Source: Eutreptiella sp. 'Long Island Sound 2002' (Eukaryota > Protista > Euglenida). From it: a stretch of DNA of 64,000 nt. A program made the position numbers and the translations under genes. Shown here piece after piece: positions 1,906-27,986 of this stretch; within the stretch, counting starts at the first letter, position 1; the number at the start of each line of letters is the position of its first letter. The notes under the pieces were generated by a model, which worked only from the letters and a program-made list of their open reading frames with translations, ran no database searches and was not told where the DNA came from. The stretch lies in contig OZ038379.1 of the NCBI GenBank assembly GCA_964036045.1, positions 55,056,001 to 55,120,000 on the forward strand. Direction: 5' to 3'.

Positions 1906-2227
1906 CTAGGTGGGTTACTTGAGGTTTCTTGATTCAAGGGGCGCTTTCGTACGGGTACCTTCGTGGCACACCACACGGCATCCTCTGTGACTACGAAGTA
2001 AAGGCCCAAAGTGTTTCTCAGGCAAAAACGAGGTAAAAACCAGGTAAAATGGGTAAAAATTCAACAACTTGCTTTGTGCGTGTTTGCTCGCCTTGCCCTT
2101 TGTTACAATGTGTAACGGACACATTTGCATGCAAATAGGTTGAAATATGGATGAACACGGAGGTGTTTTGCCACTTTTCCGTGTCCCGCCCCACACCACT
2201 CCTATGTACATGCAATTATTGTGTTGT

Positions 2228-2392
2228 AGTGGTTTTTTGCGCGTGTAAAAGGGTGTATTTGCATGCGTGGTTACCATAAGTTTAGCCTTTAAGCAAAAAG
2301 GGTCATTTATGCGCGTAAAAGGGTGTATTTACGTGTCATGTGAATTTCGTTGCGGACGCAAATTAGGTCTTTTGCGCACGCAAAATCCATGT
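2228..2392. repeat. Array of TTTGCGC(A/G)CG-type palindromic motifs upstream of a dioxygenase ORF
   Basis: Repeated tttgcgcgtgtaaaagggt / tttgcgcacgcaaaa units. The same motif family occurs at 13310-13475, 15070-15295 and 16905-17030. Confidence 0.65.
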
Positions 2393-2429
2393 AATTGCCT
2401 CTTCACTCTTAAGGGTTTCACTTTTAGGG

Positions 2430-3874: not shown

Positions 3875-4532
3875 GAAGACGCCCCGGCAACCTCTTCGGG
3901 CAGTGATTTGCAGCCCCCCGCACCACGTGCCCCACGGTTGAGTTGGTCGGCGCCCCTGAAAACGCCCCCAGGAATGGAGAAGATGGTCCCCTACACGGGT
4001 GATGTGTGGGTCACTGGGACTGGGCTTGGGAACGGTGCCATTAGCGTGTGCTCATTCACGATTGATCATGGTGAGCATAACGTGGCATACCAGCAATACT
4101 TGGTAGTATACGGGTAAAAAACGGGGTTCGGGGAGAAAGGTGTATGTGGCATGTACAGGTGGCTACTAATGTACAATGCACAATGCATGCATAGGTGAGT
4201 TGGGGAATACCTCTAGTTTGCCAATTATGATGATCAAAGTTGTGTTTGAAACTACCCCATTTTGGGCTCTTGGGGTATAGGGCCGTGTACTCGAGAGTAT
4301 AGGGCCGTATACTTAGAGTATACGGCCGTATACTGGGAGCACTTGTTTGCACCATGTGGTTGTTTCAACTTGAAAATTTCCATTGTTGTGCCTTTTGTGC
4401 CCATCTTCTTGCATGCTTGACTGACTGAAGAGACTGAAGAGTTGGTGCTTTGCTGTGCCCTGTGACTTAGTTCTTTGCCTTTGCCAAACAATTGCACACC
4501 ACTCGAAACCGATCTAGGCTCATACTTTACTC

Positions 4533-6524: not shown

Positions 6525-7277
6525 CCCTTCGTGAAGTTGCCGTTTGAATGGGAGATTCTTGGTAGCGTGAATGTGACAAATTTTTGCTTTGTTTTGCTCG
6601 TAACTTGGCGCCATCGTTTGCATTTGTTGTGCCATCTTTGTCGCTAAAAATGTCGTGAAATTTGATGTTTTACCTTGTTGGTAGCTTGCGAATGTTCGGC
6701 TCAATCACCGTGAACGCAACACGAATTTACCACATGCACGCATGCGTGAATTTCACGTGAATTCGGGTAGATGTTTGCTGAAATTTGGATTTTTTTTGGA
6801 AATTCGTACGAAATTCGCACCAAATTCGTACGAAATTCGCACCAATTTCGTACGAATATGGAGATTCTTATTAAACTCGCAAATAGCGCGCGCGACATTT
6901 GCAGCAACGTGCGCGGCCTTGGCAGGAATTTCGTACGAATCTGCCGAATTCGCACGAATTTCGTATTCATTTCGTACGAATTTCGTACAAAATTCGTACC
7001 AAATTCGTACGAAATTCGCAAATTCAGGCCCAAAGGTACTGTAACATGTTGCCGGGATTTTTTGGGGGCGCAGTTTGGGCCTCATGGGTCTGTTTGGGGT
7101 GGGACTTTCATTGAATCATGGGGACCGAAAACGGGGCTTGAGGTTTGTCCATCTAATACGTCATATTGAAGCCAAAATTTCCTGTTTCTCTAAAGAAAAA
7201 AAACAGGAAAATTGGGTCAAATTCACGTAAATCTCACGCTCCATTGAAACGGCCACTTAACCCCCTTTCACGAAGGG
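6525..7277. mobile_element. 753-bp non-autonomous derivative (MITE) of the CCCTTCGTGAA family, TA flanks
   Basis: TA|CCCTTCGTGAA at 6523-6535 and TTCACGAAGGG|TA at 7267-7279. Internal AAATTCGTACGAA array at 6750-7020. Ends match those of element 21614-27664. Confidence 0.85.
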
Positions 7278-7587
7278 TACACTCATGGATGTTGCACTGG
7301 CGGACAGCTATGGTTGGGTGATGTGGTGGCCATTGAAGGCCAGCTCAAGAAAGAAGAAGTCGAAGCCAAACCCCAAGCCAAAGTCAAGGACGGGCAAGGA
7401 GAAGGCCGTTGAAGAAGTTGAGGAAGTGGAGGAGGAACAAGAGGAGAAGAATAAGCTGTGGTGCCTCTGCAGTCAGGTATTTCTTGTGGGCTGTGGGCAT
7501 GGGTGGAAGTGTGTTGTTGTCATTCATTAATTGTCATTCATTTAAAAAGGTAGCGTCACCGGTAGGTTTTTTTTGTTTGCCTGTCGT

Positions 7588-7779
7588 CAGCGCCTCTTTG
7601 GGTGGTTGCGGTTCTTCAAGTTGAAGTTTTCATCGATCTTCAACCTTTTCAGCTTCTTTGCAGCATTCTTCAATGGCCTCCACACGTTTTTGCATGTTTG
7701 AGGGCAGTTGGGTTCGAACCAGGGACGTTACGTGCGCAAGTGTAGCATGCATATCTCTCACCCACACGGTGCCATGGCC
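7588..7779 (-). pseudogene. Small CxxC/His basic ORF, putative zinc finger, diverging from a palindrome array
   Basis: PWHRVGERYACYTCARNVPGSNPTALKH, then after a frameshift WRPLKNAAKKLKRLKIDENFNLKNRNHPKRR*. Homologous to 15318-15512 with many synonymous differences. Confidence 0.5.
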
Positions 7780-7784
7780 TTGTA

Positions 7785-7960
7785 ATACGGCCGTATACCT
7801 TGTGTATACGGCCGTATACTCGCGGTATACGGCCGTATACCTCCGATACACGGCCGTATACCGCGAGTACACGGCCGTATACCTGCCCATTCATTCTGGG
7901 TATACGACCGTATACTCGGGGGTATACGGCCGTATATTGCGGGGGGTACGGCCGTATACT
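7785..7960. repeat. Dense array of TACGGCCGTATA palindromes
   Basis: About 9 copies of (a)tacggccgtata(c) spaced ~17-22 bp apart, immediately upstream of ORF 8029. Confidence 0.85.
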
Positions 7961-8028
7961 CATAGTATTTGTTGCCAATTTCAATCTATTTTGACTAGTT
8001 TTTTGTTAGAATTCCACCCCTTCTTTCT

Positions 8029-8814
8029 GTGCAGTTCCATTCTGATCCCTGGCCACTACGGAGCATCAGTGATTATGAAGTGGTCGAGACCGAGGTGGAG
8101 TTGGTGGCGCCGAGGGCTGCCGCAGGTCAAGTGGTCTCCGGTCGGAAGTACCAGGAACCGATTGCCGTGGGGCGGGGGGATGTTGCCTTTGCCCCCTATG
8201 ACCTGGCATGCACCACTGGCAAGGACGCTGGGTACTATTACCGATTGAATGTCCGTGCCAATGGTGCACTGTATGATATTCGACTGCCCACCAGGGTGGT
8301 TGCAAATCTGAAGGAGGGGGCAATTGATGCCTTTTTGGGGGCCGCAGTGTGGTCGAAGAGCTCGGGGAAGGTGCGACTTTTTTTTAGCACCACAGGGGAA
8401 AACGGAGCATTTCGGACTCCATCATGGTGCTCCAAATTTTTAGGTGGGAGCCTGTCCCGCCGCAGCAATGCCAGGCCCTCCATGCCGAGTTGGCCGCGAG
8501 GGCGGGAAAGCAGCTTGGGGGGAGAGGACTGAAGCGGGCTCATGATGAGCCCGTTGAGATGACGGAGTTCAGCCGGACTTCCCTGTCCTTCTTGAGGGAG
8601 GCCAAGGAGGAGCTGAAGGTTGCCCATGCTGAGGGTGACGCCAAGGAGAGGAGGATTGGCCGAGGCCACCTCAAGTGCCCATGAGTGGCATCTCAAGGCC
8701 AAGGTGTTGGAGACGCAACTCCAAGCGGCCAAGGCCAATGAGGAATGCGCAAGGTCCATTGTTGCCCAGAGTGTCACACGGTCTGCACCCCCACGCCAAG
8801 CGTCTGGGAGTTAG
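8029..8814 (+). pseudogene. Transposon accessory ORF2 (globular N-terminus, coiled-coil C-terminus), frameshifted
   Basis: Frames 8029..8532, 8424..8684 and 8620..8814. C-terminal LREAKEELKVAHAEGDAKERR..LETQLQAAKANEE is heptad-like. Position is equivalent to ORF 24231. Confidence 0.45.
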
Positions 8815-10675
8815 GGCAGTGGGAGTCAGGGTAGTCAATCCGCCTCCCCAGCACGTTGCCTGCCCCCAGAGCCGGCATGACTACCCCCTTCCAACCCCGC
8901 CCTTGCAGCTTTGTGCCGGGACCCGGTGTACCGCAAGGTGCACATCTCGGGTGTACATGTGCACAATGTGCAGTTTGGGGCTACAGGAACACACAGGCAA
9001 GGGAAGGATTTCTGCTGTGCCCGCTTGTGCAGCAGGAATGAGAGGCAAAGGGAGCTAACTTGCCTTTCAAATGCACATGCGCAAGCAAATTTTCTAAGGT
9101 GGTTCCATTGGTCCACCATTCAAGTGGTACAATACAGTACCTCACAAAGAATGCCGGGGCATCGCCATATGCAGGATCCTTCTCCTCTTTCCGCCATTTG
9201 CGTTGTCGAGGCGCATAGTAGAGGGGAGGTATGTGTTGAATCAAGGGGAGTGCTCCATAGTCTCACGCAAGGGACCCCGATGCGGTTGGGTGTATATGGA
9301 GGAAGTGTTGTGGATGCGAAGGTTTACAAGGGCCGGGACTGGTTTTTAACTCCAATGCCTACCATGGGCGTGTCCCATGGACGGGCGCGCACTATGCCAT
9401 TGTTTTCTACAATGGGTGCAACCCAGATTATCTCCGTGATGAATCTATTGAAGAGTTACCGGCCTATGGCTTTCGTCCTTGGGGCCACTAGGAAGCACCG
9501 TATACTACTGGTATACGGCCGGCCGTATACCTCCAAGTATACGGACATATACCTGTCAGTATACGGCCGTATACCGGAAGTATACTTCGAAGTATTTGCA
9601 CTAATTCTTGCACGGTGTGTCCCTGTTGCATGCGCTTGTGCGCACGGTCCCATTGGGCAACTAGCCCACATATGACTGGAACATGTTTCTACAGCAATTA
9701 TTCTTACAACTATGTTTACGAATGCCCATCCGATGGAGAAGGTGCTCTGTTTGGAGACTATTGAAGAAGTTTGTGAGGGAATAAAACGCCGACAATTGAC
9801 CCCCTATGCAGTATGTGATCTGCATCCACAAACATCAACGCCACCACATTCTTTTGCTTCACATCATATGGCCCACCCTGTTTTTTTTACATTAGGATTG
9901 CGGGGACAGAGGGCAACGGCAAAGACATTTGTGGATTCAAACGGTTGCATCAGCATCGCTTGGTGATGATGTACTTTTACGACCCCATGCCTCAGGCCTC
10001 ATGATTATTTTAAAAGATGGTGAGGTAGATGCAGCCGACAAGGAGGCAATCAACCTACTCGCATGGATGCGGCGGCACCATCTTTCCATCCGGGCATTGA
10101 AGGGTTGCATGAGGACAACACACCTTACCTGTCCCTGGGGATTGATGTGTTGATTGTACATGTTAGACAACGTGCCCCATCTCTTCATAGCACAGCGGGA
10201 AACCACAACTCTTCCGGCCCGCGGAGGCGGGTTTGAACCCCAAGGGGGGTTGAGACGCACCGGACGTCCCGAACGCCCCCTTTTATCAGAGACCGAGAGC
10301 GCGAGAGAGAGAGGGACACAATGGGGGGAGGTCCAGAACGCATAAGTTAGAGAACGTGAGAAGAGTCCTGTGGATACGCCATGTTATTGGGTAACGTGCT
10401 AAGGGAGGCAGAGTGGTGTAGTCGTTATCATCGTTGACAGTCGTCGCATAGATCGCTGTTTCGAGCCCGGCCTGTAGCAGTGCTTCCTCCCACCGGCCCC
10501 GCCTGACTGGGGACTGGGACCCCTCCCGCTTTTGATTCTTTTCACCACTCCCTGACGGGCAGCTACAGAACACAGGTGATTGACCGCATAGGCGAAGAGC
10601 AAAAAGGAACCCGGCCACCTGCAGCAGTGCGCCCCACCACCGCCCCCGCCCGACGGGAGGCTACCACCCCACCCG

Positions 10676-12432
10676 TTGCTTGCCTTTGCCCGAGCCGCCG
10701 CTCGGGCGGCTCGGACAGCGGGAATCGAACATGGGACCAGCGACGCTGGCATCCAGGGTGCTTCCACTGGGGCAGGCGGCGCAGCATCCGTTCAAGGACG
10801 CGTGAGGGACTGGAGGAGGGATGCCCAACCTTACCCAACCTTCCCACACCGCGCTTCGCTTGGGCGCCATCCATAAGAAACCAAGTGTGCCTAACCGGAT
10901 GTATGTGGAACGGACATGTAGTAGTAGTCGTATGTGGGCAACAGCCATTGGCTTGAGCCTCAGCACATTGCATGGTTACGACCACTACGAACTGATTTGT
11001 GTGGAGCCGGAACCTATGAGCGGGGGTACCCGGTTAGCCAAGTATCCGTCTCTATGCCAGCCTGTCCCAGGGGAGGGTATTGGAGGTGGCCGCTAAAGAG
11101 GGTACACGGACATGTGGGTTGGAGGAATTGCATCATATCTTCACCACCCTGGTTGCATGTGCCCACGCTGAGGACAGCATTCGGAAGTATGAGGAAAATA
11201 GATGTTTGGCTGTTGTAAACTGTTATGATGCCACTGTTTTTCATAATGCCAGCGCCACGCGCGTGTTGTGTTTGTGGACCTATGGGAGGATAGCGGGGCA
11301 CACCATGATGGTCAGGCATGGGCCTCATGGTGGGTTTTTGATGGGGGAGATGATATGGCCCATCTGCAAAGGATGGATGCCGTGAGGATGGATGCCGTGG
11401 GGAAATCGAATGACCAAGTCAAAAAACTTGAGGCAGAGGGCGGCATAGAACTTGGGGGAACTCCCAAAAAATTATTGTGTTTTAAAGGTGGGGATGGGAA
11501 AGTCATGATGTCGGGTTCGTGTGGGAAATGTTGGAATTGCAATCTCAAGTATGACCAATTCGAAGCCCATTTTATTTGCAATGGCAGATTTTCCAATGCT
11601 TGCTCGCATTGGCTCCCTTATGTCTTGCATCCCTTCCGTCCGCAATGTTGGATATGTGGCACATTGTTGTGCAAGGGTGGCGACAGGCATTGGGAAATGT
11701 CTCAAGGACAGTGCCCGCACACGGGGCTCACCAGGAGCCCTCAAGGCCATGTCCCATGTCATTTCTATCCTCCGAGAAGAGGCGAAGCACATCCCTGTGT
11801 CTGAGAGAGTGATACGTGCTCCCTCGAAAGAGAAGGAACACACTCTCGACATTGACGCCTCCCGCCTTTTTTTGAAACACATGAGTTGCACACCGAGTTG
11901 GTGCGCATTGTTGCAATGTATTGTACCAATATTGTTTCGTGGGAGGGCAACATGTGGCTGGCTCAGAACCAGTGCCGTCCTGCACCACATGTTGCAGGCC
12001 TGTTACTATATGCAAAAGATTTGGCGCCATGTGGGTCCTGTTCCCATGGATCAACGCCAACGCTATGCATGCATGGTTGCACAATTCACCCGGGCATGGA
12101 AAGCACTGGGCCGGAGTGTTGCGGTTTGGGTGCATTGGGTGGTCTGCCACAGTGGTGCACACCTCCAAAGGCGGGGTAATTTTATGAAGTTCTCTCCCAT
12201 GCCCACGGAATGGAGGAACAAAAGTTTTAAAATGTATATCCGCCATTGTTTCCAAGGGCGGAAGCTGAGCAAGCCTTATGTCACCCGATGGGGACTAAGG
12301 CATTCTCTGCACCTATATGCCCTTGATTGGGGCATCTGTTTGTGGTTTGGGGAAAAGGGCTTGGGTAGAGAGGGCATCAGGTTTGGCATGCAACGCATGC
12401 GGAGGAAGCAGCGTGCACCAAAACACATGTAG
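10676..12432 (+). pseudogene. RAG1/Transib/CMC-like DDE transposase, frameshifted
   Basis: VVNCYDATVFHNASATR (D1), WASWWVFDGGDD, GGDGK (D2), CWNC, and WVHWVVCH-x19-E-WRNKSFK. The last matches RAG1 YFHKTLAH-x19-E-SGNKLFR spacing exactly. Confidence 0.8.
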
Positions 12433-12949
12433 GTATATATCATGTGATATGATATGATGTGCAATATGCATACGTATGTATATTAAGTATATATGATGTG
12501 CATAAGTGGATCACATTTGACATTTCAGATGGGACGTCAAACAAGGATGCTTCTTGTGGTCTTCTGCTTTGCTCATACGGTGGTCTTTTGTGTGTACAAT
12601 GTGTTTGGTGGTTGGAGAGTCATGAGTACTGACAAGGGGGGGGGGGGGGGCGGTAGTTGATGAGAATGGTGGCATGGGTAGAAGGCAGAAAGTCCCCGTT
12701 CACTCCGAGTATACGGCCGTATACTTCTGAGCATACAGCCGTATACTCCGAAGGATGCGGCAAGAATACTTCTCCAATACTTCGAGTACGCTGACAAATA
12801 CCTCAAAAACTGCAGATTGCCACACACAAGTGTGGATGTATGGAATCGGGTTTGTGGTTGTTTGACCCCCTCACCCCCTATTTTCAGGGTGCCAAACTCA
12901 TTTTTTCATATCCCATGGGCACACGGAACGACTAGGTACATGTGACAAA

Positions 12950-14421: not shown

Positions 14422-14940
14422 TCAATTCTTCGAGCCGTGGAGCAGCACCCATGAACCCAAAGGTAGACGGCCCCCCAACTCCCCTACCGCAAAGTGCTCA
14501 AGGGAACGTTGCCAAACTTTGGTGCCATCAATGGAAATCCCCACCAAAACTTGGTTCCCTTGTGTTACGGGGGGTTTATTCTGCCACATAAGCTGCAGCT
14601 TCTCCTTCACATTCACCCTAGACGCAATGAAATCACTACCACCGGGAGTGTGCAACACGAAATCAATGGGGTGGGGGGCACCCAAGGTCTTTCGCACGGA
14701 CACGATTTTCGCCCAACGGCAATACCAAATCAAAGGTGACCGGCTGTACCGCAGCCGCCGCACACTTTGCCCCTCCTTCCTCGATTCCCACAATACTGCC
14801 ATGGCATTCAACTCCAAATCGAGTTGATGATCCGTGGGGACATCGGTGTACACGTCCACCACATTCGTAACCCCACTCCGCATTCTTACAGGCCAATCCG
14901 CCCCCATAATATCATTCACCGCACGCTGCAAACTGCTGAT
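14422..14940 (-). pseudogene. N-terminal fragment of a RAG1/CMC-like transposase (D1 region)
   Basis: VLVGISIDGTKVWQRSLEH...LGSWVLLHGSKN parallels WLPIAVDGTSRHEAS...LSSWWQSGGSKNWETL in ORF 25582. Confidence 0.65.
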
Positions 14941-15317
14941 CCGTTCACTATGGTCTTTGCAATTGCCCAGTGCCAGGTGGTGGAACCGCCACGGATGCAG
15001 CGGCATAATATAGAAAAAACATCTGGGACGCATGTGGCACAAGCGCGTTGCATTGCAGGTAAGAGACACAATTACCGCGTTTTTGCGTGTGTAAATGAGC
15101 CTATTTGCGTGCCCACCGTACTTTCTTTACGGGCGCAAAAAGGGCCTTTTGCGCACGCAAAAGGGTGTTTTTGCGTTCTCGCTCGAAAAACAAGCGACGC
15201 GCAAAAGGTGTGATTTGCGCACACAAAAGGGTGTTTTTGTGTCCCAGGTGCAAAGTTTGCAAACGCGCAAAAGGCGCGTTTTACGTACGCAACAATGGGG
15301 TAAAGGAAGCATTTGCA

Positions 15318-15512
15318 ATGCCATGGCACCGTGTGGGTCACAGGTATGCATGCTACATTTGCACGCGCAATACCCCCGGTTCAAACCCAACTGCCTCAAA
15401 AGTTGAAACATGTGTGCGGGTCATTGAAGAATCCTGCGAAGAAGTTGAAAAGGTTGAAGATCAATGAACAGTTCAACTTGAAGAACCGCAACCACCCAAA
15501 GAGGCGCCGACG
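15318..15512 (+). pseudogene. Small CxxC basic ORF, putative zinc finger (duplicate at 19471-19665)
   Basis: ATG at 15318: MPWHRVGHRYACYICTRNTPGSNPTA, then after a frameshift SLKNPAKKLKRLKINEQFNLKNRNHPKRR. Lies directly downstream of a TTTGCGCACG array. Confidence 0.5.
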
Positions 15513-15639
15513 ACAAGGAGATGGCAGAAACGCCACCACTGACCATCACTTTTGAAATGAATGACACATTGACGTTGAAAGGAGACCACCCAAATTCTTC
15601 GCGACGTGGCCTATCCCCCCGCAAAGCCAGCACACATGT

Positions 15640-16660
15640 GCCAAAGGGTCGTTACACTTGAAATTGCGACACCCTGAGAGGGCAACTTGCGCCTTGGTGT
15701 CAGCTATAATCGCACACACAACGGGAGTTGCAAACCCTCCCTCATTCAAAACCGGCATCTCATTCACTGCCAACACATAACTGCCTTCATTGTTTGGGTG
15801 CGTTCCGGCATGGAATCTCAATTTTGCTCAAGGTTTGGCAATGGGGGGGGATGACATTGCCAGCAGTCCTTCCTTTCCAATGACCACCGGACTTTGGACT
15901 CCATGGGATGCACCATTTCGTGCATTGTGCGGGCAGTGGGTTGGTTAAGGCTTTGATGCATCACCATGGGTGGAAGAAGGGGAGGGCATTGGTTTGGGTG
16001 CAGTGGTTTTGGGATGACATCAGGGTTGAGAGCCCTACGGCCACGGCGGCCGATTGTGAGCAAGAGAAGGTGGGAAAGAAGGCCCTGCGATTGGAGCAAA
16101 CTGCCGCGGGGGCATGGGTGAAAAGGCAAGGGTGGGATTGCATTGTCGACTACTTGGAGGGGAACAATCTTTTACAAGTCCCAGTGCAAGTGGGGGGGGG
16201 GGGGGTTACAATGACATGGACTGCTTGTTGGCGTTTGTGGGGAGAGAAATTTGCAGTGACTTGTGACCTTGTGTGGAAGGAGCGGAGGTTGGACCTTCGC
16301 GATTTGGATGTTCTGAAAGGTGCTTTGTCCGAGATGGGGAGTGCCCACAAAGCTTGTGGGTTTGTGGTGACCCACCTGTGGGTGGACCACATGTGGGGGA
16401 TTGCGAGGGAATGGGGTACCGTGTCCGCATTCGGTGCTTTCAGGGGTGAAGGGAGGCATTAGTCGTGGTAGAGTGAGATTAGGAAGAGGAGCTTCAAGGG
16501 GGGAAGTAAGAAACGGGGGTCTCGCCTACGGGGGGCATGCCGAGCACTGAGGAACGGGTGGGTCGAGGTGCTTCGGAACAACAACCTGGACTGGGGCTCG
16601 TATGCCAAGGGGTTCAACGTCTGGCAGCCTTCGTGGACCCGACAAGAGGTAGATGGTAGT
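15640..16660 (+). pseudogene. C-terminal half of a RAG1/CMC-like transposase (copy 1)
   Basis: CLHC, DFGLHG, THLWVDH-x19-E (GEGRH). In-frame TAG stops. Confidence 0.7.
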
Positions 16661-16904
16661 GCTATGAAGTATTGGGAAAGGGTGATGCGTAAGGGGAAGT
16701 TGTAGGGTTTCTTACATGTTTGTCTTGCATACTTTGGTGATTTCGTGGTGGAATCCCACTTGGACACGTGTGACTGAATGATCGGAACAATGCAACGAAA
16801 GATCTCAGCAATTGCCTCCATGTTTGCTTGGATGCATGGCATGCATTGGACCCGGGATGTGGGTTTGTGTTTGGGTGTAACGGGCAGGGGGGGGGGGGGG
16901 GTAA

Positions 16905-17086
16905 AGCAGGCATTTGCGTGGGTTTTGCGTATGTAAAAGGGGTATTTTGCGTCCCCAGTGAAAAAATACATGGTAAGTAAAAAGGGCAATTTACACGTGC
17001 AAAAGGGCCCTTTTACGCACGCAAAAATGAAGTAAAATACCTGAAGGATAATACCGGACCTCGAAAGCACAAGAGAACACTACGGG
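16905..17086. mobile_element. Right end of a TTTGCGCACG-family element: subterminal array and terminus ...CACTACGGG|TA
   Basis: Array 16905-17030, then tacggg (17081-17086) and TA (17087-17088). Repeated in the duplicate at ~21056-21239. Confidence 0.5.
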
Positions 17087-17462
17087 TAGGGGTAGGGGAC
17101 CACCACGGGTGTTTCCAACGTACAACCCAAGCCATGGGGGTATTTTTCGCATGCCGGATTCGAATTTCATACTCATTTTTTACCAAAATGGTGTTTTCCA
17201 CCAATTCCTCATTTTTGCCCCATTTTTACCTCCTTTTTGCGGTGTTTAGTTACATACATGACATCCACCAAATCATTCAACATCTCTATAGTCGTATATT
17301 ATATCCTATTTCTATATCCTATATTATAAACCCCCGTCATCCCTCCATGCATTCTCAACAACACGCACCGCTGCATGGAGGTGCCCAGCGTGATTGTCTG
17401 GTACCTTTGGAATAAATTTTTTGCCTTGAGCTACATCTTGGTTTGTGGTGAAAGCCTTTGTA

Positions 17463-19077
17463 CCCTTCGTGAACCGGCCGTTTGAATGGGAGATTCACGG
17501 CAGCGTGAATATCACAAATTTTAGCCGTGTTTTGCTTGTAACTGGGTGCCATCGTGTGCGTTTCTCGTGCTATCTTCGCCCAAAGTGAGATCCAACGAAT
17601 GTGTGCAAATTAGAGGTTTTAAGTAGCCACATGGTTCAACATATTCGGTGAGAATTGGTCAAATCTGAAATTCACGCACCCGAATTCACACATAAATTAG
17701 GTTACGGTTAGGGTTAGGGCATAAAGCTAGGTTCACAGATTCACGAGACTGTGAAATTCGCACGAAATTCGTACGAATTTCGTACGAATTTGCCCCAATT
17801 TCCACTGTTTCACTTTCTCACGGCTCTGAAAGCCTTTCTTTGCTTCTTCTTGTGACCATGTCCCAGCAGTCCCGCCCCGATCCTGCTGCCGACACCCTCG
17901 CGCAGTACCAAGCCCTCCCCGTCGCCCACCACCAATTGGAGCAGGCGACCTACCAGTCGGGGGCACTGGGGGTGGACGATGTTGTGGGCTAAAGAGCATC
18001 CCTCGACCCCTCCCCCGATGTCATTCACATCGACCATCGCAGCCCCACGCGCAACTCCTATCTTGGGGGGAGGGCTTGGTCCACAACTTTGTGGAGGGAA
18101 CTCCGCCGCCAACTCCCCTCTCTTACGTTTTTGCATCTGACCCCTTAACCCGCCACCATTGACCAACTGCTCAATTCCATGCGTACGAACTCGGTGGGGA
18201 AGCCAAAGGACGCCCACGTCCAGGTGTACCCCACCACTAACCTTGTGTATACCCCCCCCCCCCCCAACTGCGACATGTTGTGCCTGCACGATCTTGCTGC
18301 AGGGGCACCATCTGACCGCTCCTTTTTCCCCTTCTCCCGGCACCTTGCCAACCCCCGGTTGTGTCACAATTTGGGCATCGCCCCTTTCCATCCCACCATC
18401 CCCCCACAGGTGCACATCCCCGACATCACCCACCCCACCTTCTACAGTACAAGTTCTTTGCAATGGTCCCGTGGTGCCTCATGTGCCCCCCCCTTCGTTT
18501 CGAGTGAACCCCACCTCCGCACCGAACACCTTCCCGAACCCCCTTATGGGGTGATGGGCAACCACGACCCCGCCCCGGACACGGTTGGCCCCTCCCAGCC
18601 GCCCCTCAACTTTGTTGATGGGAAAGGCTACATTGTGCTTTGGGGGCGTGTGGAACCACGAGATTGTGAGGTGGGGTGGAACAAGGTGATGAAGGCGTGG
18701 GGCAACGGCGACGAAAAAGTCGTCCCAACAAATTTTGGGCTGCTATTCAACGCCGGGCGGACTGAAGATGAGGCAAGGGATCCGGATCTCCCGCGGCGCT
18801 GGCAAAGCAAAAACTCCTTGGGGTCGGGCGTCGGCGGGCCTCTCTTCAAGAAGTCCCCCCCCCCCCCACCGTAAGTGTACCTCAAGTTGGGGACCTCCAC
18901 CCAGTGACGCCGGGCAGCGTCATCGTGGCGAGTGTGGGGAGTGGGGCCCAGCTCCCCCACTCCGATCTCGCCACCCACCCCGAGGGCCTCCCCCCCGACA
19001 GTAGGGACATCTCGGGGTGCCACCTGAGTAGCTTCCTCTGCGTGTCACAGGACTACCAGGTGGCGGTGGAGGCGGGG
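17463..19077 (+). mobile_element. Truncated left part of the CCCTTCGTGAA element, produced by the tandem duplication
   Basis: TA|CCCTTCGTGAACCGGCCGTTTGAATGG at 17461. Near-identical to 21614-23226 and ends inside the dioxygenase domain. Confidence 0.9.
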
Positions 19078-19789
19078 ACGGCCCTGGGGGAGGCCGTTCA
19101 CTATGGTCTTTGCAATTGCCCAGTGCCAGGTGGTGGAACCGCCACGGATGCAGCGGCATAATATAGAAAAAACATCTGGGACGCATGTGGCACAAGCGCG
19201 TTGCATTGCAGGTAAGAGACACAATTACCGCGTTTTTGCGTGTGTAAATGAGCCTATTTGCGTGCCCACCGTACTTTCTTTACGGGCGCAAAAGGGGCCT
19301 TTTGCGCACGCAAAAGGGTGTTTTTGCGTTCTCGCTCGAAAAACAAGCGACGCGCAAAAGGTGCGATTTGCGCACACAAAAGGGTGTTTTTGTGTCCCAG
19401 GTGCAAAGTTTGCAAACGCGCAAAAGGCGCGTTTTACGTACGCAACAATGGGGTAAAGGAAGCATTTGCAATGCCATGGCACCGTGTGGGTCACAGGTAT
19501 GCATGCTACATTTGCACGCGCAATACCCCCGGTTCAAACCCAACTGCCTCAAAAGTTGAAACATGTGTGCGGGTCATTGAAGAATCCTGCGAAGAAGTTG
19601 AAAAGGTTGAAGATCAATGAACAGTTCAACTTGAAGAACCGCAACCACCCAAAGAGGCGCCGACGACAAGGAGATGGCAGAAACGCCACCACTGACCATC
19701 ACTTTTGAAATGAATGACACATTGACGTTGAAAGGAGACCACCCAAATTCTTCGCGACGTGGCCTATCCCCCCGCAAAGCCAGCACACA

Positions 19790-20810
19790 TGTGCCAAAGG
19801 GTCGTTACACTTGAAATTGAGACACCCTGAGAGGGCAACTTGCGCCTTGGTGTCAGCTATAATCGCACACACAACGGGAGTTGCAAACCCTCCGTCATTC
19901 AAAACCGGCATCTCATTCACTGCCAACACATAACTGTCTTCATTGTTTGGGTGCGTTCCGGCATGGAATCTCAATTTTGCTCAAGGTTTGGCAATGGGGG
20001 GGGATGACATTGCCAGCAGTCCTTCCTTTCCAATGACCACCGGACTTTGGACTCCATGGGGTGCACCATTTGGTGCATTGTGCGGGCAGTGGGTTGGTTC
20101 AGGCTTTGATGCATCACCATGGGTGGAAGAAGGGGAGGGCATTGGTTTGGGTGCAGTGGTTTTGGGATGACATCAGGGTTGAGAGCCCTACGGCCACGGC
20201 GGCCGATTGTGAGCAAGAGAAGGTGGGAAAGAAGGCCCTGCGATTGGAGCAAACTGCCGCGGGGGCATGGGTGAAAAGGCAAGGGTGGGATTGCATTGCC
20301 GACTACTTGGAGGGGAACAATCTTTTACAAGTCCCAGTGCAAGTGGGGGGGGGGGTGTTACAATGACATGGACTGCTTGTTGGCGTTTGTGGGGAGAGAA
20401 ATTTGCAGTGACTTGTGACCTTGTGTGGAAGGAGCGGAGGTTGGACCTTCGCGATTTGGATGTTCTGAAAGGTGCTTTGTCCGAGATGGGGACTGCCCAC
20501 AAAGCTTGTGGGTTTGTGGTGACCCACCTGTGGGTGGACCACATGTGGGGGATTGCGAGGGAATGGGGTACCGTGTCCGCATTCAGTGCTTTCAGGGGTG
20601 AAGGGAGGCATTAGTCGTTGTAGAGTGAGATTAGGAAGAGGAGCTTCAAGGGGGGAAGTAAGAAACGGGGGTCTCGCCTACGGGGGGCATGCCGAGCACT
20701 GAGGAACGGGTGGGTCGAGGTGCTTCGGAACAACAACCTGGACTGGGGCTCGTATGCCAAGGGGTTCAACGTCTGGCAGCCTTCGTGGACCCGACAAGAG
20801 GTAGATGGTA
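19790..20810 (+). pseudogene. C-terminal half of a RAG1/CMC-like transposase (duplicate copy 2)
   Basis: Duplicate of 15640-16660, with THLWVDH...EGRH*. Confidence 0.7.
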
Positions 20811-22008
20811 GTGCTACGAAGTATTGGGAAAGGGTGATGCGTAAGGGGAAGTTGTAGGGTTTCTTACATGTTTGTCTTGCATACTTTGGTGATTTCGTGG
20901 TGGAATCCCACTTGGACACGTGTGACTGAATGATCGGAACAATGCAACGAAAGATCTCAGCAATTGCCTCCATGTTTGCTTGGATGCATGGCATGCATTG
21001 GACCCGGGATGTGGGTTTGTGTTTGGGTGTAACGGGCGGGGGGGGGGGGGGGTAAAGCAGGCATTTGCGTGGGTTTTGCGTATGTAAAAGGGGTATTTTG
21101 CGTCCCCAGTGAAAAAATACATGGTAAGTAAAAAGGGCAATTTACACGTGCAAAAGGGCCCTTTTACGCACGCAAAAATGAAGTAAAATACCTGAAGGAT
21201 AATACCGGACCTCGAAAGCACAAGAGAACACTACGGGTAGGGGTAGGGGACCACCACGGGTGTTTCCAACGTACAACCCAAGCCATGGGGGTATTTTTCG
21301 CATGCCGGATTCGAATTTCATACTCATTTTTTACCAAAATGGTGTTTTCCACCAATTCCTCATTTTTGCCCCATTTTTACCTCCTTTTTGCGGTGTTTAG
21401 TTACATACATGACATCCACCAAATCATTCAACATCTCTATAGTCGTATATTATATCCTATTTCTATATCCTATATTATAAACCCCCGTCATCCCTCCATG
21501 CATTCTCAACAACACGCACCGCTGCATGGAGGTGCCCAGCGTGATTGTCTGGTACCTTTGGAATAAATTTTTTGCCTTGAGCTACATCTTGGTTTGTGGT
21601 GAAAGCCTTTGTACCCTTCGTGAACCGGCCGTTTGAATGGGAGATTCACGGCAGCGTGAATATCACAAATTTTAGCCGTGTTTTGCTTGTAACTGGGTGC
21701 CATCGTGTGCGTTTCTCGTGCTATCTTCGCCCAAAGTGAGATCCAACGAATGTGTGCAAATTAGAGGTTTTAAGTAGCCACATGGTTCAACATATTCGGT
21801 GAGATTTGGTCAAATCTGAAATTCACGCACCCAAATTCACACATAAATTAGGTTACGGTTAGGGTTAGGGCATAAAGCTAGGTTCACAGATTCACGAGAC
21901 TGTGAAATTCGCACGAAATTCGTACGAATTTCGTACGAATTTGCCCCAATTTCCACTGTTTCACTTTCTCACGGCTCTGAAAGCCTTTCTTTGCTTCTTC
22001 TTGTGACC

Positions 22009-23882
22009 ATGTCCCAGCAGTCCCGCCCCAATCCTGCTGCCGACACCCTCGCGCAGTACCAAGCCCTCCCCGTCGCCCACCACCAATTGGAGCAGGCGAC
22101 CTACCAGTCGGGGGCACTGGGGGTGGACGATGTTGTGGGCTAAAGAGCATCCCTCGACCCCTCCCCCGATGTCATTCACATCGACCATCGCAGCCCCACG
22201 CGCAACTCCTATCTTGGGGGGAGGGCTTGGTCCACAACTTTGTGGAGGGAACTCCGCCGCCAACTCCCCTCTCTTACGTTTTTGCATCTGACCCCTTAAC
22301 CCGCCACCATTGACCAACTGCTCAATTCCATGCGTACGAACTCGGTGGGGAAGCCAAAGGACGCCCACGTCCAGGTGTACCCCACCACGAACCTTGTGTA
22401 TACCCCCCCCCCCAACTGCGACATGTTGTGCCTGCACGATCTTGCTACAGGGGCACCATCTGACCGCTCCTTTTTCCCCTTCTCCCGGCACCTTGCCAAC
22501 CCCCGGTTGTGTCACAATTTGGGCATCGCCCCTTTCCATCCCACCATCCCCCCACAGGTGCACATCCCCGACATCACCCACCCCACCTTCTACAGTACAA
22601 GTTCTTTGCAATGGTCCCGTGGTGCCTCATGTGCCCCCCCCTTCGTTTCGAGTGAACCCCACCTCCGCACCGAACACCTTCCCGAACCCCCTTATGGGGT
22701 GATGGGCAACCACGACCCCGCCCCGGACACGGTTGGCCCCCCCCAGCCGCCCCTCAACTTTTTTGATGGGAAAGGCTACATTGTGCTTTGGGGGCGTGTG
22801 GAACCACGAGATTGTGAGGTGGGGTGGAACAAGGTGATGAAGGCGTGGGGCAACGGCGACGAAAAAGTCGTCCCAACAAATTTTGGGCTGCTATTCAACG
22901 CAGGGCGGACTGAAGATGAGGCAAGGGATCCGGATCTCCCGCGGCGCTGGCAAAGCAAAAACTCCTTGGGGTCGGGCGTCGGCGGGCCTCTCTTCAAGAA
23001 GCCCCCCCCCCCCCCCACCGTAAGTGTACCTCAAGTTGGGGACCTCCACCCAGTGACGCCGGGCAGCGTCATCGTGGCGAGTGTGGGGAGTGGGGCCCAG
23101 CTCCCCCACTCCGATCTCGCCACCCACCCCGAGGGCCTCCCCCCCGACAGTAGGGACATCTCGGGGTGCCACCTGAGTAGCTTCCTCTGCGTGTCACAGG
23201 ACTACCAGGTGGCGGTGGAGGCGGGGGAGACGCGCTGGGACACCATTCAGCTGCAGAGGGAGGACATGCTGCTGATGGTGGCCACTAGCCGCCACCATGG
23301 GTTGCATGCCCCCCCCAACTCCAAGGATGGGCTGCAGGCGGTTTTTTTTTATTTTGTGGACCCCCCGTCCCCGGCACCGCCACCACCAGCCCAACACCAC
23401 ACACCTGGACCTCACCCCCCCCCCCCCCCCCCCAAGAGGCCCTGGCCGTTGCCGGGGATTTGTCCAGCTGGGACTTCCCTAGCGTGTACGAGGTGTTGTA
23501 GGTGGCGAAGGGGGTGGTTGGGAGGGTGGGGTTTTGGGAGGGGGGTGCTGCCCAGGCCCTCTTCGCCGACGCCCTCGAGGCGGTCTCAGCAGGCCCCTCG
23601 ACCTGCCCCTTCCACCCCACCTTCCTCTCCCGCTCCGCCCCGAGCTCCAATCTTGGCGTCATGGAGATCGCCAAGCAGAGCATGCTCTTCTTCGTGGGGA
23701 GCGTGTACCAGATCGAGATCTGCAAGGGGCACAACGTCGATGCGGGGTCGGAGATCCACTTCGCCATGTCGGGCGTTGCCCCCCCGATGCAGCCGACCAC
23801 GATGTGGCATCTGGTCAACACAGCGCCAGCGTGGCGGTCGCCCAAATGTAGGAAGGCTGGGGCATGGTCAATCACATGTTGA
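22009..23882 (+). pseudogene. Cargo ORF1 with PhyH-like 2OG-Fe(II) dioxygenase domain
   Basis: ATG 22009 is in frame with ORF 22330 across two TAA codons. GYIVL, AQLPHSD (H 23107, D 23113) and EDMLLMVATSRHHG. The C-terminal frame 23502 (LFADAL..PSTCPFHP) resembles ORF 6183. Confidence 0.7.
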
Positions 23883-24230
23883 TGTGATTGCAAGGTGTGC
23901 TTGCTTGTGTGTTTGCTTCCTTTATTGCCAAATTGGACGAAATTCACGTGAAATTCATACGAATTTTGTACCAATTTCACGTGAATGCCTGGGTGTGAAT
24001 AGAGAAGCTTCTGTGAAATTCGCACCCATTTCGTACGAATTTCTGTGAATTTCGTCCACTTTGTTCGTTTTATTGTTGCATTGCCCCATCTTCGCTCCCC
24101 CTTTCTCCATTGGTGCCTTGCACATTTCTCCCTGTCTATAGGTCCCGTTGCACGCGTGGTCGCCCGACATTCGGCGGCAGGGCGGGGGCAGGGGGGGGCG
24201 TTGGGGGAGTGGGTGGAGCAGTAGCATCAA

Positions 24231-24805
24231 GTGCAGTGGGCGGGTGCGTGGGAGGTGCGCGCGATGAGCGCGGAGGCCGCCAACGGCGACCTCGAGGCCC
24301 GCCTGTCCAGAGCCAATGAGGACAGGCGGGGCGCCGAGACGCGGTTGGCGGACCTTACCAAGGAGAGGGACCGCTTGGCCGCGAGGGTGAAAGCCCTGGA
24401 GCGCGACTTGGGGATGGCGCGCGAGGCCGCGGGGGCACCGGCAAAGCCAGTGGCACAGACAGGGAAGGGCCTGAGGGTGCCGAGGGCCCAACAGTGGAGA
24501 CGGCGGGGGGGGGGGGGGGGGGCAATGCCTCCGATGTCCGGTACCTTCTGGCCGGCGCGCAGGCGTGGCATGCCCAGGCCGAGTGGCATCCCCAGGCGGA
24601 GGCATGCGCCGGCCAGATGTCGGCCGTGTTGACGGGTCTCCGGATGGCCCTGCTAGTGAGTGGCCAGCAGGTCGAGGTGGACACCGTGGCGCCCGACGTT
24701 GCCAAGGTCAGTGCCGCCCACGATGTCGTGGGCCGGCAGTACCCCCCGCATCGCCTCACGTCAGCGGCGATGGACGCCTCCTTCGTTGAGGCAGTGGTGG
24801 AGTAG
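24231..24805 (+). pseudogene. Accessory ORF2, coiled-coil protein (frameshift at G-run ~24506-24522)
   Basis: LEARLSRANEDRRGAETRLADLTKERDRLAARVKALERDL heptads, continuing in frame 24494..24805. Confidence 0.55.
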
Positions 24806-25359
24806 AGCTCCCAGGGCTCCGCTGGCCGGAGCTCCGCTCCACGGGGGGGGGGGTAGCTCAACCTTTAACTTCGGGACCACCCGTCCCTTCTAGCCTGGAC
24901 GGATGTTAATTGTACATGTTTATATATGAATACATGTAAAAATATGCTGACCCCCCCCCCGGGCATGGGGAGTTTGAACGACATGTGGGGTACCCCCCCC
25001 ACTTTGCGAAAGTTCCTTCAACACTGTTTGTATTTTAGTTGGGGTCTCCTGTGCCAGTCGATCTGTTACACTGCTGAGGGTCTCAACTGAAATGATGAAA
25101 AAAGTGGACATTGGTCCGGGTGTGCGGTAACCCCTGAGCTTCAGCCCGTGCTTGCTTTGTGAGGGCCAACGAGGGCAAAAGGATGACTCAAATCTTTTTT
25201 TTGAAATAATTCGCTCGGATCCACGTGAAATCCGTACGAAATTCGTGCGAATTTCACGGAACCTTTAGTATTCACACACATTCATTCACGTGAAATTCGT
25301 ACGAAATTCGTACGAATTTCGTACGATTTTTGACGTGAATCTCACCAAATTTAGTCACC

Positions 25360-27211
25360 TTGGGCATGGGGATGGTAGAAACCTCCGAAAAAAACCTCCC
25401 CAATTCCACAGGCTTTCTACCAAACACCATGCTGCGTGGTGATGCAGCTCGGCCCAAGGCACCATTCCATTTGGTGGCCGATCGTACGCAACGGAGGCGC
25501 CTACAAGAGCTCCAGCAAGTTGTTACCAAGGAGCTTGCGACACCCTACACCGTCAAGTAGCTGCCCCACACCGGGCAAATAGTGCTTACCCTAGAAACAA
25601 GAGTTGTAGTGGCCGTCACGCCTGAGCCCACCATGGAGGAGAGCTTGATTATGGCCGTCTGGCGGATCTGGTCATTGCACCTCTCTAGGACTGAGGCGCG
25701 GTGCCTAGTGGGGAGCATGACGCACGGTGTGGTATGGGACCAAGTGTACAACATGCTTCGGCAGCTAGCGTTACCGGAGTCCCCGGCGTTCACTACCTAT
25801 ACGGGAGACGACACGACCATCCATGGTGCGGCCTGCTACCTACCCGACCGCATCGGCCACCTGTACAAGTGTCCACAAACCCCACCCTCGGACATCATGC
25901 AGCCCGGGGACCCACGGCTGCATTGGTTGCCTATTGCGGTGGATGGTACATCAAGGCATGAGGCCTCGTACGTCCATTGCACGCTTGGTGGCACCACCAA
26001 CCCTAACCAACTGTCTAGTTGGTGGCAATCGGGGGGCAGTAAAAATTGGGAGACCCTCTACGTGGCCTCCCAAGAAATTGATTTTGATGTCGAGTTGCGC
26101 AAGGCCGCAACCGTAAGTTTTAAAGATATGGAAGGGAACGATAGGCAGTCCCCCCCTTTTTTTTCTGTGTGCAGATGGGAAAGCACAGGTGCTCATGGCG
26201 GGCTGCCACAACTGGAAGGCAGAATCCCCTGGTGCCAGCGTGTGTTGGGTCTGCATGTGCAACCGTGCTGTTTGCCTTGCTACCTTTGGCAGAACAAGTG
26301 CAATAGACGGCAACTTGGAAGGGACTATTGCCATAGGTGCTGTATAGAGGACCATTATGAGTGATAGGCGAGTGCTTGATTACGTCCTCCATGGGGTCCT
26401 CCGTGTCCTGTTGTGTGGCATCAACGGGACATGGGACCGAGTTTTACAATCAACAGGTAAGGCACCGGCCACTGTGGCACGCACCATTCTCCAACCAGTT
26501 CTAGATGAGGCACGGCTTGCAGCACGAACTTGCACCCGTGCCTCATTAAACAATGACAAGGCAAATAGCAAGGGGAAGGTAAGGATGGAGTGTGCTGCTG
26601 CCATCCATTTCATGCGGAATAGGGGTTCGGAGAAGATAATAGATGCTTGCCTACAACACCCTAGTGTGAGGCAACATCAAGTAGGAGGAAAAAGTTGGGA
26701 GTCGGTATGCAAAACATGGTGGGAGAATTTTGCAAGCATGTGTGTATACGCTTGGCGTTCCGCATGGTTCTCCGGGGCCGAGTTGGGGCGGCTCCGGAAC
26801 CATAGCATAGCCATGGGCACCGCCCACAATGAGCTCCAGTGGGGCAATTTTCTGTGGATTCATCTTTGGATCGACCACATTCATTATTTTGCAAAGAAGT
26901 GGAGAATCTTGTCAAAGTTCTCCTGCTTTGCCATGGAGGGAAGTCACCAGAGGCTGAAGCGCATGTTGCGCAACAGCGGGGGCCTAAGCCTCCTCCGGGG
27001 GAGACTAGGGGTGCAAGTGGTTGTGGACAACCACACCATTGATGATCGCCTTTGGTCGCATGGGTGGGATGCGGCCAAAAGGGCACAAAATTGGCAAGGG
27101 CCCATAAGTGTACAAATGTATTCAAGCCGTACAAGAAGACGGCTTCTAACCGACATGCAGCACCTTCGGACTCTACAGCGGCGGTTCCGGTGTCGCAAGA
27201 AACGGACATGA
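25360..27211 (+). pseudogene. Near-intact RAG1/Transib/CMC-like DDE transposase (2 in-frame TAG, 1 homopolymer frameshift)
   Basis: D1 IAVDGT (25942), GGSKNWETL (cf. RAG1 DESDHETL), D2 CADGK (26174), CWVC (26243), LDYVLH, H26861-x4-H26876, and E26936 exactly 20 codons after the second H. Confidence 0.85.
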
Positions 27212-27986
27212 GGTCACCACACAAACCCAGACCATTGTTGCCTATGGCCAGGGTGCATGCAGGGATGCACCGGAGAGCGTACCTGGGTTGTTAGGACAAA
27301 TCAGGGGGTGCACACCGGTAACATTTGTGTAGAATCGCGTGAATTCACGTGAAATTCGTACGAAGTTCGTACCAAATTCGTGCGAATTTCGTACGAATTC
27401 ACGTGAATTCACGCCTATGAACTGGCTACAGGCTTGCCGGGTTTTGGCACCTCTCGTTTGGGGCGTGGTCATGGTGGATGCTTTTGGGGCGTGACCTTCA
27501 CTGGATGATGCGTAATGAAGCCGGGGGAAGAATTTTTCCCCCTCAAATCCCTCGGAAGGAACCAAAAATATGGCGTTTCCCCCCGAAAACCTCAAAATTT
27601 GGGTCGATTCACGTGAATATTCGCGCCCCATCCAAACGGCCACTTATCCCCCGTTCACGAAGGGTACATTGGCGCTTGTGAGCCTAACCCAACTAACATC
27701 TGTTTGTGCCCTTGAGCCACACCAATGAGTTTGTGGTCAAAGCCCTAGTGCTTGTGCCACAACCCCCACTTCGCATCTCTTTGTGCCTGTGAGCCAAAGC
27801 AATCTGTTTGAGTTTGGAGCCATAGCGCTACTGACACAAACTCTTGCATAATGGTGTTTGGTGGACAAGCTAGTGAGCCCGAAGAGAAGCAGTCCTTCCA
27901 CCTCTATTGCCACGTCCCTGCACTTGACCCCCCCCCCCCCCGGCAAGCACCAAAATCATCATCTGTTCTTGTCTAGCACCCTCACA

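Follow-up and report, generated by a model that had tools for sequence, protein, structure and literature searches.

The stretch of DNA analysed here, referred to as the window, comprises 64,000 nucleotides of the euglenid Eutreptiella sp. 'Long Island Sound 2002' (assembly GCA_964036045.1, contig OZ038379.1, positions 55,056,001 to 55,120,000 of the forward strand), and all coordinates without a contig handle are those of the window. At 21610-27668 it holds a DNA transposon of 6059 bp, the extent of which was established by comparison of copies, by its ends and by an empty-site proxy. The element contains three coding regions on the + strand, in the order ORF1 (open reading frame 1; a probable Fe(II)/2-oxoglutarate (2OG) dioxygenase), ORF2 (a coiled-coil protein) and ORF3 (a transposase), confirming the number and order given in a preliminary description of the locus. 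These are enclosed by terminal inverted repeats (TIRs) and a target-site duplication (TSD) and are accompanied by four arrays of a short palindrome. From left to right, the features are as follows.

21608-21609, no strand: left copy of the TSD, TT, pairing with TT at 27669-27670 (matching dinucleotides in 8/8 copies; concordant with the empty-site proxy)
21610-21625, + strand: left 16-bp TIR, TGTACCCTTCGTGAAC, with 5'-TG...CA-3' termini; alignments between copies begin exactly at 21610
21627-21641, + strand: left subterminal box, GGCCGTTTGAATGGG, 1 bp away from the TIR, kept at both ends of all copies
21895-21951, no strand: array 1 of the palindrome TTCGTACGAA, with an 11-bp period, ~60 bp 5' of the ORF1 ATG; the same motif and period recur in L008, L009 and L010 (40% transposase identity)
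22009-23882, + strand: ORF1 pseudogene, probable Fe(II)/2OG dioxygenase, from translation; intact relatives include P0190 (526 aa)
23930-24055, no strand: array 2, made up of TTCGTACGAA-type repeats and separating ORF1 from ORF2
24172-24805, + strand: ORF2 remnant, the coiled coil and C-terminal part, with a 5' coding deletion of ~770 bp at ~24172 and a frameshift in the G run 24505-24521
25218-25340, no strand: array 3, 5' of the transposase gene
25429-27211, + strand: ORF3 transposase pseudogene, from translation; 80-88% identical to the intact 587-aa P0122
27337-27414, no strand: array 4, 3' of the transposase gene, ~255-330 bp from the end of the element and the mirror counterpart of array 1
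27627-27641, - strand: right subterminal box, with GGCCGTTTGGATGGG as its reverse complement, separated from the TIR by 11 bp, from copy comparison
27653-27668, - strand: right 16-bp TIR, reading GTTCACGAAGGGTACA on the + strand, from copy comparison
27669-27670, no strand: right copy of the TSD, TT, from copy comparison and the empty-site proxy

The element in the window is very probably a now inactive member of a family of autonomous cut-and-paste DNA transposons that is present in high copy number in this genome, has a transposase of the RAG1/Transib/EnSpm fold, falls within the CACTA-Mirage-Chapaev-Transib (CMCT) clade and carries ancestral cargo. For comparison, copies L001-L007 were taken from an assembly with a 100%-identical ORF (P0189), apparently of the same organism. 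Canonical elements measure 6.93-6.98 kb (L004, L006 and L007) and keep ORF1, ORF2 and ORF3 in the same order; relative to them, the window copy lacks the ~770 bp of ORF2 and has lesions in all three reading frames. ORF1 is interrupted by TAA at 22141, TAA at 22297 and one or more frameshifts around the poly-C run 23411-23433, and ORF3 by TAG at 25558, TAG at 26345 and a frameshift within the stretch C7T8 (26153-26167), the three ORF3 lesions having been reported before. Sense codons occupy the positions of the window stops in other copies (22143/22144 A>G and 22297 T>C in ORF1; 26347 G>T in ORF3), and at 26150-26154 other copies lack 3-4 bases. Since the other copies are intact at the lesion sites, the damage is private to the window copy. 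Runs of C or G of up to ~20 bases within the coding regions coincide with frameshifts at 22406-22416, 23003-23016, 23411-23433, 24505-24521 and 24950-24958, and some of these may be errors of long-read assembly rather than mutations.

Between the window copy and L004, substitutions at the first, second and third codon positions number 68/57/106 in ORF1, 33/25/51 in ORF2 and 24/18/40 in ORF3, against a flat profile in the non-coding ends; given this third-position excess, all three ORFs are, or were, real genes. The search for intact copies that the preliminary description had proposed was successful, yielding a 587-aa transposase as well as elements of ~6.95 kb. The intact transposase P0122 represents 203 sequences at ≥90% identity and P0001 represents 248, and the summed contig depth of the family in the sequencing runs of the organism is very high. 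The family is thus large and recently active, and the window copy is a relic. In place of repaired window frames, the analysis worked with relatives that are naturally intact.

Judged from its motifs, ORF1 is probably an Fe(II)/2OG dioxygenase of the PhyH-like group. An HxD motif (PHSD) lies near 23110 and a distal HHG near 23300, in a PhyH-like context consisting of a hydrophobic strand after HxD and a GD-hydrophobic-x-HHG segment, and a language-model search with ORF1 returned PhyH in 68 of the 100 nearest Atlas clusters (score 0.94). The corresponding residues H375-x-D377 and H445 (P0190 numbering) are kept at 28% identity in the ORF1 homologue of L009, a contig from another sample described below. 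It is less likely, though to be taken seriously, that ORF1 is a conserved accessory protein of some other fold, in which HxD...H is coincidental or non-catalytic. With this agrees the outcome of every profile comparison: ORF1 of both lineages gave no match in Pfam, NCBIfam or PHROGs, nor to any 2OG oxygenase family at E values up to 10, and hmmsearch of the ORF1 profile gave no PDB sequence match. The AlphaFold2 (AF2) model of ORF1, from a 16-row alignment, is unusable (pLDDT 29, pTM 0.19), and the language-model neighbours are leads only. The retention of the three residues at such divergence and their PhyH-type surroundings nevertheless stand against a coincidence, as does the occurrence, in another lineage of the genome, of the same transposase superfamily fused to a PhyH-like domain. 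The earlier assignment as a PhyH-like dioxygenase therefore survives as a motif-level reading, with HxD...H kept and a language-model lead to PhyH, and with no profile match.

The fusion in question is a 1060-aa ORF on the - strand of L003 (2658-5837), in which a weak PhyH/2OG-FeII_Oxy_3 match at aa 243-423 is combined with a clear transposase-profile match at aa 716-1068 (E 4.6e-19); a second copy, at 1983-5496 on the - strand of L002, is nested inside a canonical element. The oxygenase match has an E value of 0.02-0.07 (0.021-0.034 for PhyH alone), which is below the Pfam cut-off, covers profile positions 11-202 of 213 and includes HRD and a distal H. By its sequence, this ORF appears to join a dioxygenase to a transposase, in a remote branch of the family. 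No relation between ORF1 and this PhyH-like domain was found either by hhalign of the ORF1 profile (probability 0.2%) or by permissive BLASTP. Likewise, the L003 ORF upstream of the family-B transposase (6447-7643) has no similarity to ORF1, and the ORF1 profile found no homologue in a second diverged element at 4270-12790, where weak transposase-profile matches at 11247-12429 were the only ones. Matches of the ORF1 core and of the fusion PhyH-like domain to phage genomes (tblastn) were at chance level, and the searches made with ORF1 gave no TET/JBP signal. The TET/JBP genes carried by fungal transposons suggest, by analogy and rather tentatively, that ORF1 might modify nucleic-acid bases or chromatin and so help the element to escape silencing.

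Sequence comparison identifies the cargo as an ancient component of the element that has been under selection. The contig L009 (7.3 kb) encodes a 592-aa transposase 40% identical to the family, and on it an ORF1 homologue (28% identical to P0190 over 378 aa, E 2.6e-29, its N-terminal 165 residues being cut off at the contig end) is followed by an array (1646-1812), ORF2, an array (4888-5042) and the transposase. This layout being shared at 40% transposase identity, cargo and arrays predate the divergence. A recent acquisition of the dioxygenase gene, or its nested insertion in a single subfamily, is very unlikely: although transposons do passively exchange dioxygenase genes (PMC12730594), and copies with internal ORF1 deletions exist (L005), the same order of genes and arrays in another sample, the codon-level constraint on ORF1 and the absence of TIRs or TSDs around it all oppose such an origin. 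A separate nested insertion of the dioxygenase, which the preliminary description had named as the finding that would speak against its own interpretation, is contradicted by the retention of the cargo in the canonical copies and in L009.

The transposase residues described previously were confirmed in the reading frame, at D 25942-25944, D 26174-26176, CxxC 26243-26254, DxxH with H at 26390-26392, HxxxxH 26861-26878 and E 26936-26938. In the numbering of the intact relatives, D167, D243, C266-x2-C269, H472-x4-H477 and E497 are conserved in the family alignments, and the same residues are found in the window frame. The CxxC follows the second D at a distance of 23 residues, the HxxxxH comes 203 residues further and the E 19 residues after the second H, a spacing that, in sequence terms, is close to that of RAG1 (D600/D708/E962, with C727/C730 and H937/H942). 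D167, D243 and E497 would accordingly be the catalytic triad, and the CxxC (266/269) and HxxxxH (472/477) would form a zinc site as in RAG1. The RAG1-like core spacing emphasised previously is conserved in the family and is not specific to the lineage, since the whole CMCT clade has C(2)C and H(3-4)H in common (Kojima 2025, PMC12730594).

An AF2 model of the transposase from a 28-row alignment (pLDDT 86.9, pTM 0.80) places D167 in the first strand of an RNase H sheet, D243 just past strand four and E497 in a helix, which is the usual DDE arrangement. The predicted structure matches RAG1 over its entire core (residues 460-1007), HzTransib and, equally well, the transposase models of EnSpm and Plavaka. 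The first 49 Foldseek matches in the PDB are all RAG1, HzTransib or BbRAGL, with E values from 4.4e-10 down to 2e-5, the next being the P element at 5.6e-3. This ranking cannot discriminate RAG1 and Transib from EnSpm or Plavaka, because the PDB contains no structure of the latter two. Among ESM-Atlas clusters, Transposase_21 (TM-scores 0.65/0.60), Plavaka (0.65/0.53) and DUF1280 (0.60/0.62) match the model, the Transposase_21 and Plavaka matches spanning 457-470 residues (470 for Plavaka), and the nearest language-model neighbours of the transposase are RAG1 clusters and DUF1280. These matches indicate that the modelled transposase is a member of the broad CMCT clade and not specifically a relative of RAG1 or Transib. 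Both the fold, which is common to the RAG1/Transib and the EnSpm/Plavaka transposases, and the TSD (2 bp in 8/8 copies, within the 2-5 bp of the clade) agree with this placement. A 2-bp TSD is also a trait of Mirage, and DUF1280, borne by clusters among the nearest neighbours of the transposase, may be a mark of Mirage-type transposases.

A true Transib or RAG-like (RAGL) transposon, directly related to the ancestor of RAG1, would account for the best solved-structure matches (RAG1, HzTransib and BbRAGL) and for a spacing of CxxC, HxxxxH and E identical to that of RAG1. It is nonetheless highly improbable: the TSD is 2 bp rather than 5 bp, there is neither a CAC heptamer nor a nonamer-type TIR (Transib features as in PMC1131882), no RAG2-like gene is present in the element, no Pfam RAG1 domain matched, and the EnSpm and Plavaka models fit at least as well, their structures being absent from the PDB.

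With a profile built from 15 relatives, 663 representatives of 50%-identity clusters were found at E ≤ 0.001 among 1.84 billion proteins of public genomes and metagenomes; the 10 clusters that were looked up are named 'hypothetical protein' or nameless, mostly on short contigs. Pfam gave nothing informative for the window ORFs or their intact relatives, coiled-coil noise for ORF2 apart, and at E values up to 10 it gave no match for 6, then 28, members of the transposase family, RAG1_RNase_H, ZnC2 and ZnH2 included; hmmsearch of the transposase profile against PDB sequences gave none either.

The element ends in 16-bp inverted repeats, 5'-TGTACCC...GGGTACA-3', which are TGTACCCTTCGTGAAC in every copy compared. 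The perfect 12-bp inverted ends CCCTTCGTGAAC that were reported at 21614 and 27664, each adjoining TA, are present; the inverted repeat reaches 4 bp beyond them on each side, which shifts the limits from 21614-27664 to 21610-27668, and alignments between copies start at 21610 and stop at 27668. Matches to CCCTTCGTGAAC with ≤1 mismatch number 5 in the window, compared with 0.38 expected. Outside TGTA/TACA, the dinucleotides are equal within a copy and variable between copies, in 8/8 cases: TT for the window copy, CT for a short element elsewhere in the window, CA for L001, GT for L003, TT for L004, AC for L005, CG for L006 and AA for L007. Pairs that match and yet differ in this manner are not due to chance, and a TA duplication does not explain them. 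The element is hosted by a ~90-bp tandem repeat (21530-21609 and 27669-27860), a neighbouring unit of which served as the empty-site proxy, and once the flanks are rejoined across one TT, the reconstructed site aligns to it without gaps. This fit and the dinucleotide matches together set the limits at 21610-27668, with TT at 21608-21609 and 27669-27670. The target duplication is therefore 2 bp of no fixed sequence, the TA that had been taken for it lies inside the TIR and is part of the element itself, and the supposed CCC ends with an EnSpm-like TSD give way to 5'-TGT...ACA-3' ends with a non-specific one. An element of 6051 bp that ends in CCC and duplicates TA, forming a RAG1-like lineage comparable to fungal ESTA, is scarcely credible. 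TA does stand directly outside CCCTTCGTGAAC in every copy, and in ESTA such TSDs are paired with RAG1-like transposases (PMC12730594), but TGTA/TACA is kept within the inverted repeat of all copies, the dinucleotides beyond it behave as duplications in 8/8, alignments are bounded by 21610 and 27668, and the paralogous repeat unit fits the empty site with one TT and without TGTACA. Next to the TIRs, the GGCCGTTTGAAT box is spaced 1 bp from the left TIR and 9-11 bp from the right TIR (window, L001 and L004-L007), an offset of one helical turn that is kept in all copies and recalls the 12/23 asymmetry of Transib and of recombination signal sequences.

Several points weigh against the interpretation as a whole, the failed ORF1 searches and model being among them. 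No sequence-profile method ties the transposase to RAG1, Transposase_21, Plavaka or DUF1280, so that its assignment rests on predicted structure and motifs, and the equation of D167/D243/E497 with D600/D708/E962 of RAG1 is one that we infer from order, spacing and modelled secondary structure. The termini are 5'-TGTA...TACA-3', whereas those of most CMCT lineages are CA...TG, PlavakaA with TGT...ACA being an exception. The palindrome arrays, described next, are probably dispensable in cis for transposition. Finally, estuary metatranscriptome contigs 85-95% like ORF1 and ORF3 are patchy and cover the non-coding ends too, and such environmental matches do not establish transcription.

ORF2 was described previously as a coiled-coil protein; the coiled coil is present, and what remains in the window is the 3' remnant of a larger ORF. 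In the canonical copies read, ORF2 requires frame changes in all, while in L009 it is a single ORF of 506 aa that combines a globular domain with a basic stretch and a coiled coil. Profile searches with ORF2 returned coiled-coil noise only. In the runs of the organism, summed contig depth over the ORF2 region (24088-25281) is about a tenth of that over ORF1 and ORF3, reflecting either greater subfamily divergence (below the 85% limit used) or frequent deletion. In the arrays, the palindrome TTCGTACGAA, 10 bp long, recurs with an 11-bp period. They are situated ~60-120 bp 5' of each start codon, with one more after the last gene; the outer two are mirror-placed, ~275-330 bp from each element end. 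Their conservation in elements diverged to 40% argues for function. Plausibly they serve the three genes as promoters, or else are bound by a dimeric protein of the element, for which ORF2 is the obvious candidate. ORF2 would be a nuclear, dimeric coiled-coil protein and, as a doubtful suggestion by analogy, might bind the arrays as TnpA of En/Spm binds subterminal repeats.

A 478-bp internal-deletion derivative at 7970-8447 of L003 consists of the left 240 bp and the right 230 bp without arrays and has its own GT duplication. Its junction, 21849 joined to 27438, has a depth of 2,467-3,761 in the runs of the organism, and it appears to be an amplified short element. Because this array-less derivative has a TSD of its own and a high junction depth, the arrays seem dispensable for movement, and a role in expression is favoured. 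The short window element mentioned above is a 761-bp non-autonomous relative at 6521-7281, resembling a miniature inverted-repeat transposable element. Bounded by a pair of the CCCTTCGTGAAC matches, it has the ends TATACCC.../...GGGTACA, is flanked by a CT duplication, contains two palindrome arrays and shows ~83% identity to the main element's ends.

Further observations concern the surroundings. A 4.14-kb segment is tandemly duplicated (14941-19077 and 19094-23226, 99.3% identity), taking in the left flank together with the initial 1.6 kb of the element, and leaves a truncated second left end at 17459-19077 with a CCCTTCGTGAAC match at 17463; it is either a segmental duplication after the insertion or an assembly artefact. 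Diverged relatives of the transposase family occur at 1-925, 11247-12429, 14425-16702 (duplicated at 19702-20854) and 55176-56879, with profile E values of 1e-56 to 8e-3, and at least five lineages of the family are present within the window; the relative at 14425-16702, which is 48% identical to P0183, has been rearranged so that both strands carry pieces of it. Telomere-like runs GGTTAGGGTTAGGG are found in the left subterminal region (21855-21878) and also 3' of the transposase gene in L009 (7150-7200). An intact 546-aa piggyBac-type transposase ORF (Pfam DDE_Tnp_1_7) adjoins elements at 12136-13776 of L002, and reverse transcriptases of long interspersed nuclear elements are present in L004, L008 and L010. 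Dinoflagellate and Euglena spliced-leader sequences gave no match in the window.

The element has three co-oriented genes, each preceded by a TTCGTACGAA array, and in the mechanism proposed the ~587-aa transposase of ORF3 would cut at the TG...CA ends and insert with a 2-bp stagger. A more far-reaching proposal, improbable as it stands, is that an unnamed, widespread protist lineage of RAG1-fold transposons has carried an Fe(II)/2OG dioxygenase since before its divergence to 40% identity, fused in one branch, and that this enzyme modifies DNA of the element itself, for instance the TTCGTACGAA arrays with their CG and TA steps, either shielding it from silencing or marking it for the transposase. 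If this were true, a mobile element would, the host being a euglenid, be linked to the base-J type DNA hydroxylation known in Euglenozoa. The window copy, a dead relic, contributes nothing on its own. The family, on the other hand, is notable for its host range, its stable three-gene design, its phased palindrome arrays and the apparent dioxygenase-transposase fusion in a sister branch. It extends the RAG1/Transib/EnSpm clade to an abundant lineage that current profile libraries miss, and carries the pairing of transposase and 2OG dioxygenase beyond fungi, with a different-looking, probable enzyme in an old and stable partnership, for which reason a functional link between transposition and oxidative modification is worth testing. 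Natural intact material exists in the form of the 587-aa transposase, the ~6.95-kb elements and the short derivatives with defined ends and 2-bp TSDs.

Among known systems, En/Spm (CACTA) elements have CACTA ends, a 3-bp TSD, a TnpD transposase and a TnpA protein that binds subterminal repeats. The present element resembles them in the match to the Transposase_21 model cluster, in its several genes, in the short repeats inside its ends and in a second protein that possibly binds these. It differs in lacking CACTA ends, a 3-bp TSD and a Transposase_21 sequence match, in having arrays between the genes also, and in the apparent spread of a derivative without arrays. With Transib, the RAG1 core and BbRAGL (PDB 6pqx, 4wwx and 6b40), the similarity is structural only, at ~10-12% identity, and the first and second D are separated by 76 residues here and by 108 there. 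Transib proper, with its 5-bp TSD and TIRs containing a CACAATG heptamer and an A-rich nonamer (PMC1131882), is excluded, as the element has a 2-bp TSD, a TIR of TGTACCCTTCGTGAAC with the GGCCGTTTGAAT box in place of heptamer and nonamer, and no RAG2-like partner.

PlavakaA, a CMCT lineage of fungi with 2-bp TSDs and TGT...ACA termini (PMC12730594, section 3.2.2), has the same end features as the element, and the ESM-Atlas cluster with Pfam Plavaka matches its modelled transposase, though no better than does Transposase_21. The transposase has no Pfam Plavaka (PF18759) match at E values up to 10, the host is a protist rather than a basidiomycete, and the three-gene layout with phased palindrome arrays sets the element apart; the Plavaka that carries a dioxygenase is PlavakaB, with TET/JBP cargo (PMC12730594). 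ESTA elements of rust fungi, which are EnSpm-like with TA TSDs, RAG1-like by HHpred and equipped with TET/JBP genes (PMC12730594), share with the element membership of the CMCT clade, a RAG1-like transposase seen only by remote or structural comparison and a 2OG-dioxygenase gene, here a probable one. They differ in duplicating TA rather than any 2-bp sequence, in having TET/JBP cargo where ORF1, if a dioxygenase, looks PhyH-like, in the kingdom of the host, and in having no counterpart to the extra ORF2 and the arrays.

The pairing of a CMCT-clade transposase with a 2OG dioxygenase is already described in fungi (Kojima 2025), where TET/JBP genes are carried by KDZ, hAT, Harbinger, EnSpm, Plavaka and Helitron transposons (Kojima 2025, PMC12730594). 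The preliminary description was accordingly right about the type of transposase and about the enzyme cargo being integral, and overstated both the RAG1 specificity and the novelty of the pairing, the latter given fungal ESTA, EnSpm and Plavaka elements with TET/JBP. What the fungal elements and the present one have in common is a DNA transposon with a 2OG-dependent dioxygenase, here probable, that is thought to counter silencing. In fungi, the gene has been exchanged among superfamilies, whereas the association described here is old, being shared at 40% transposase identity, and has apparently become a fusion in one lineage.

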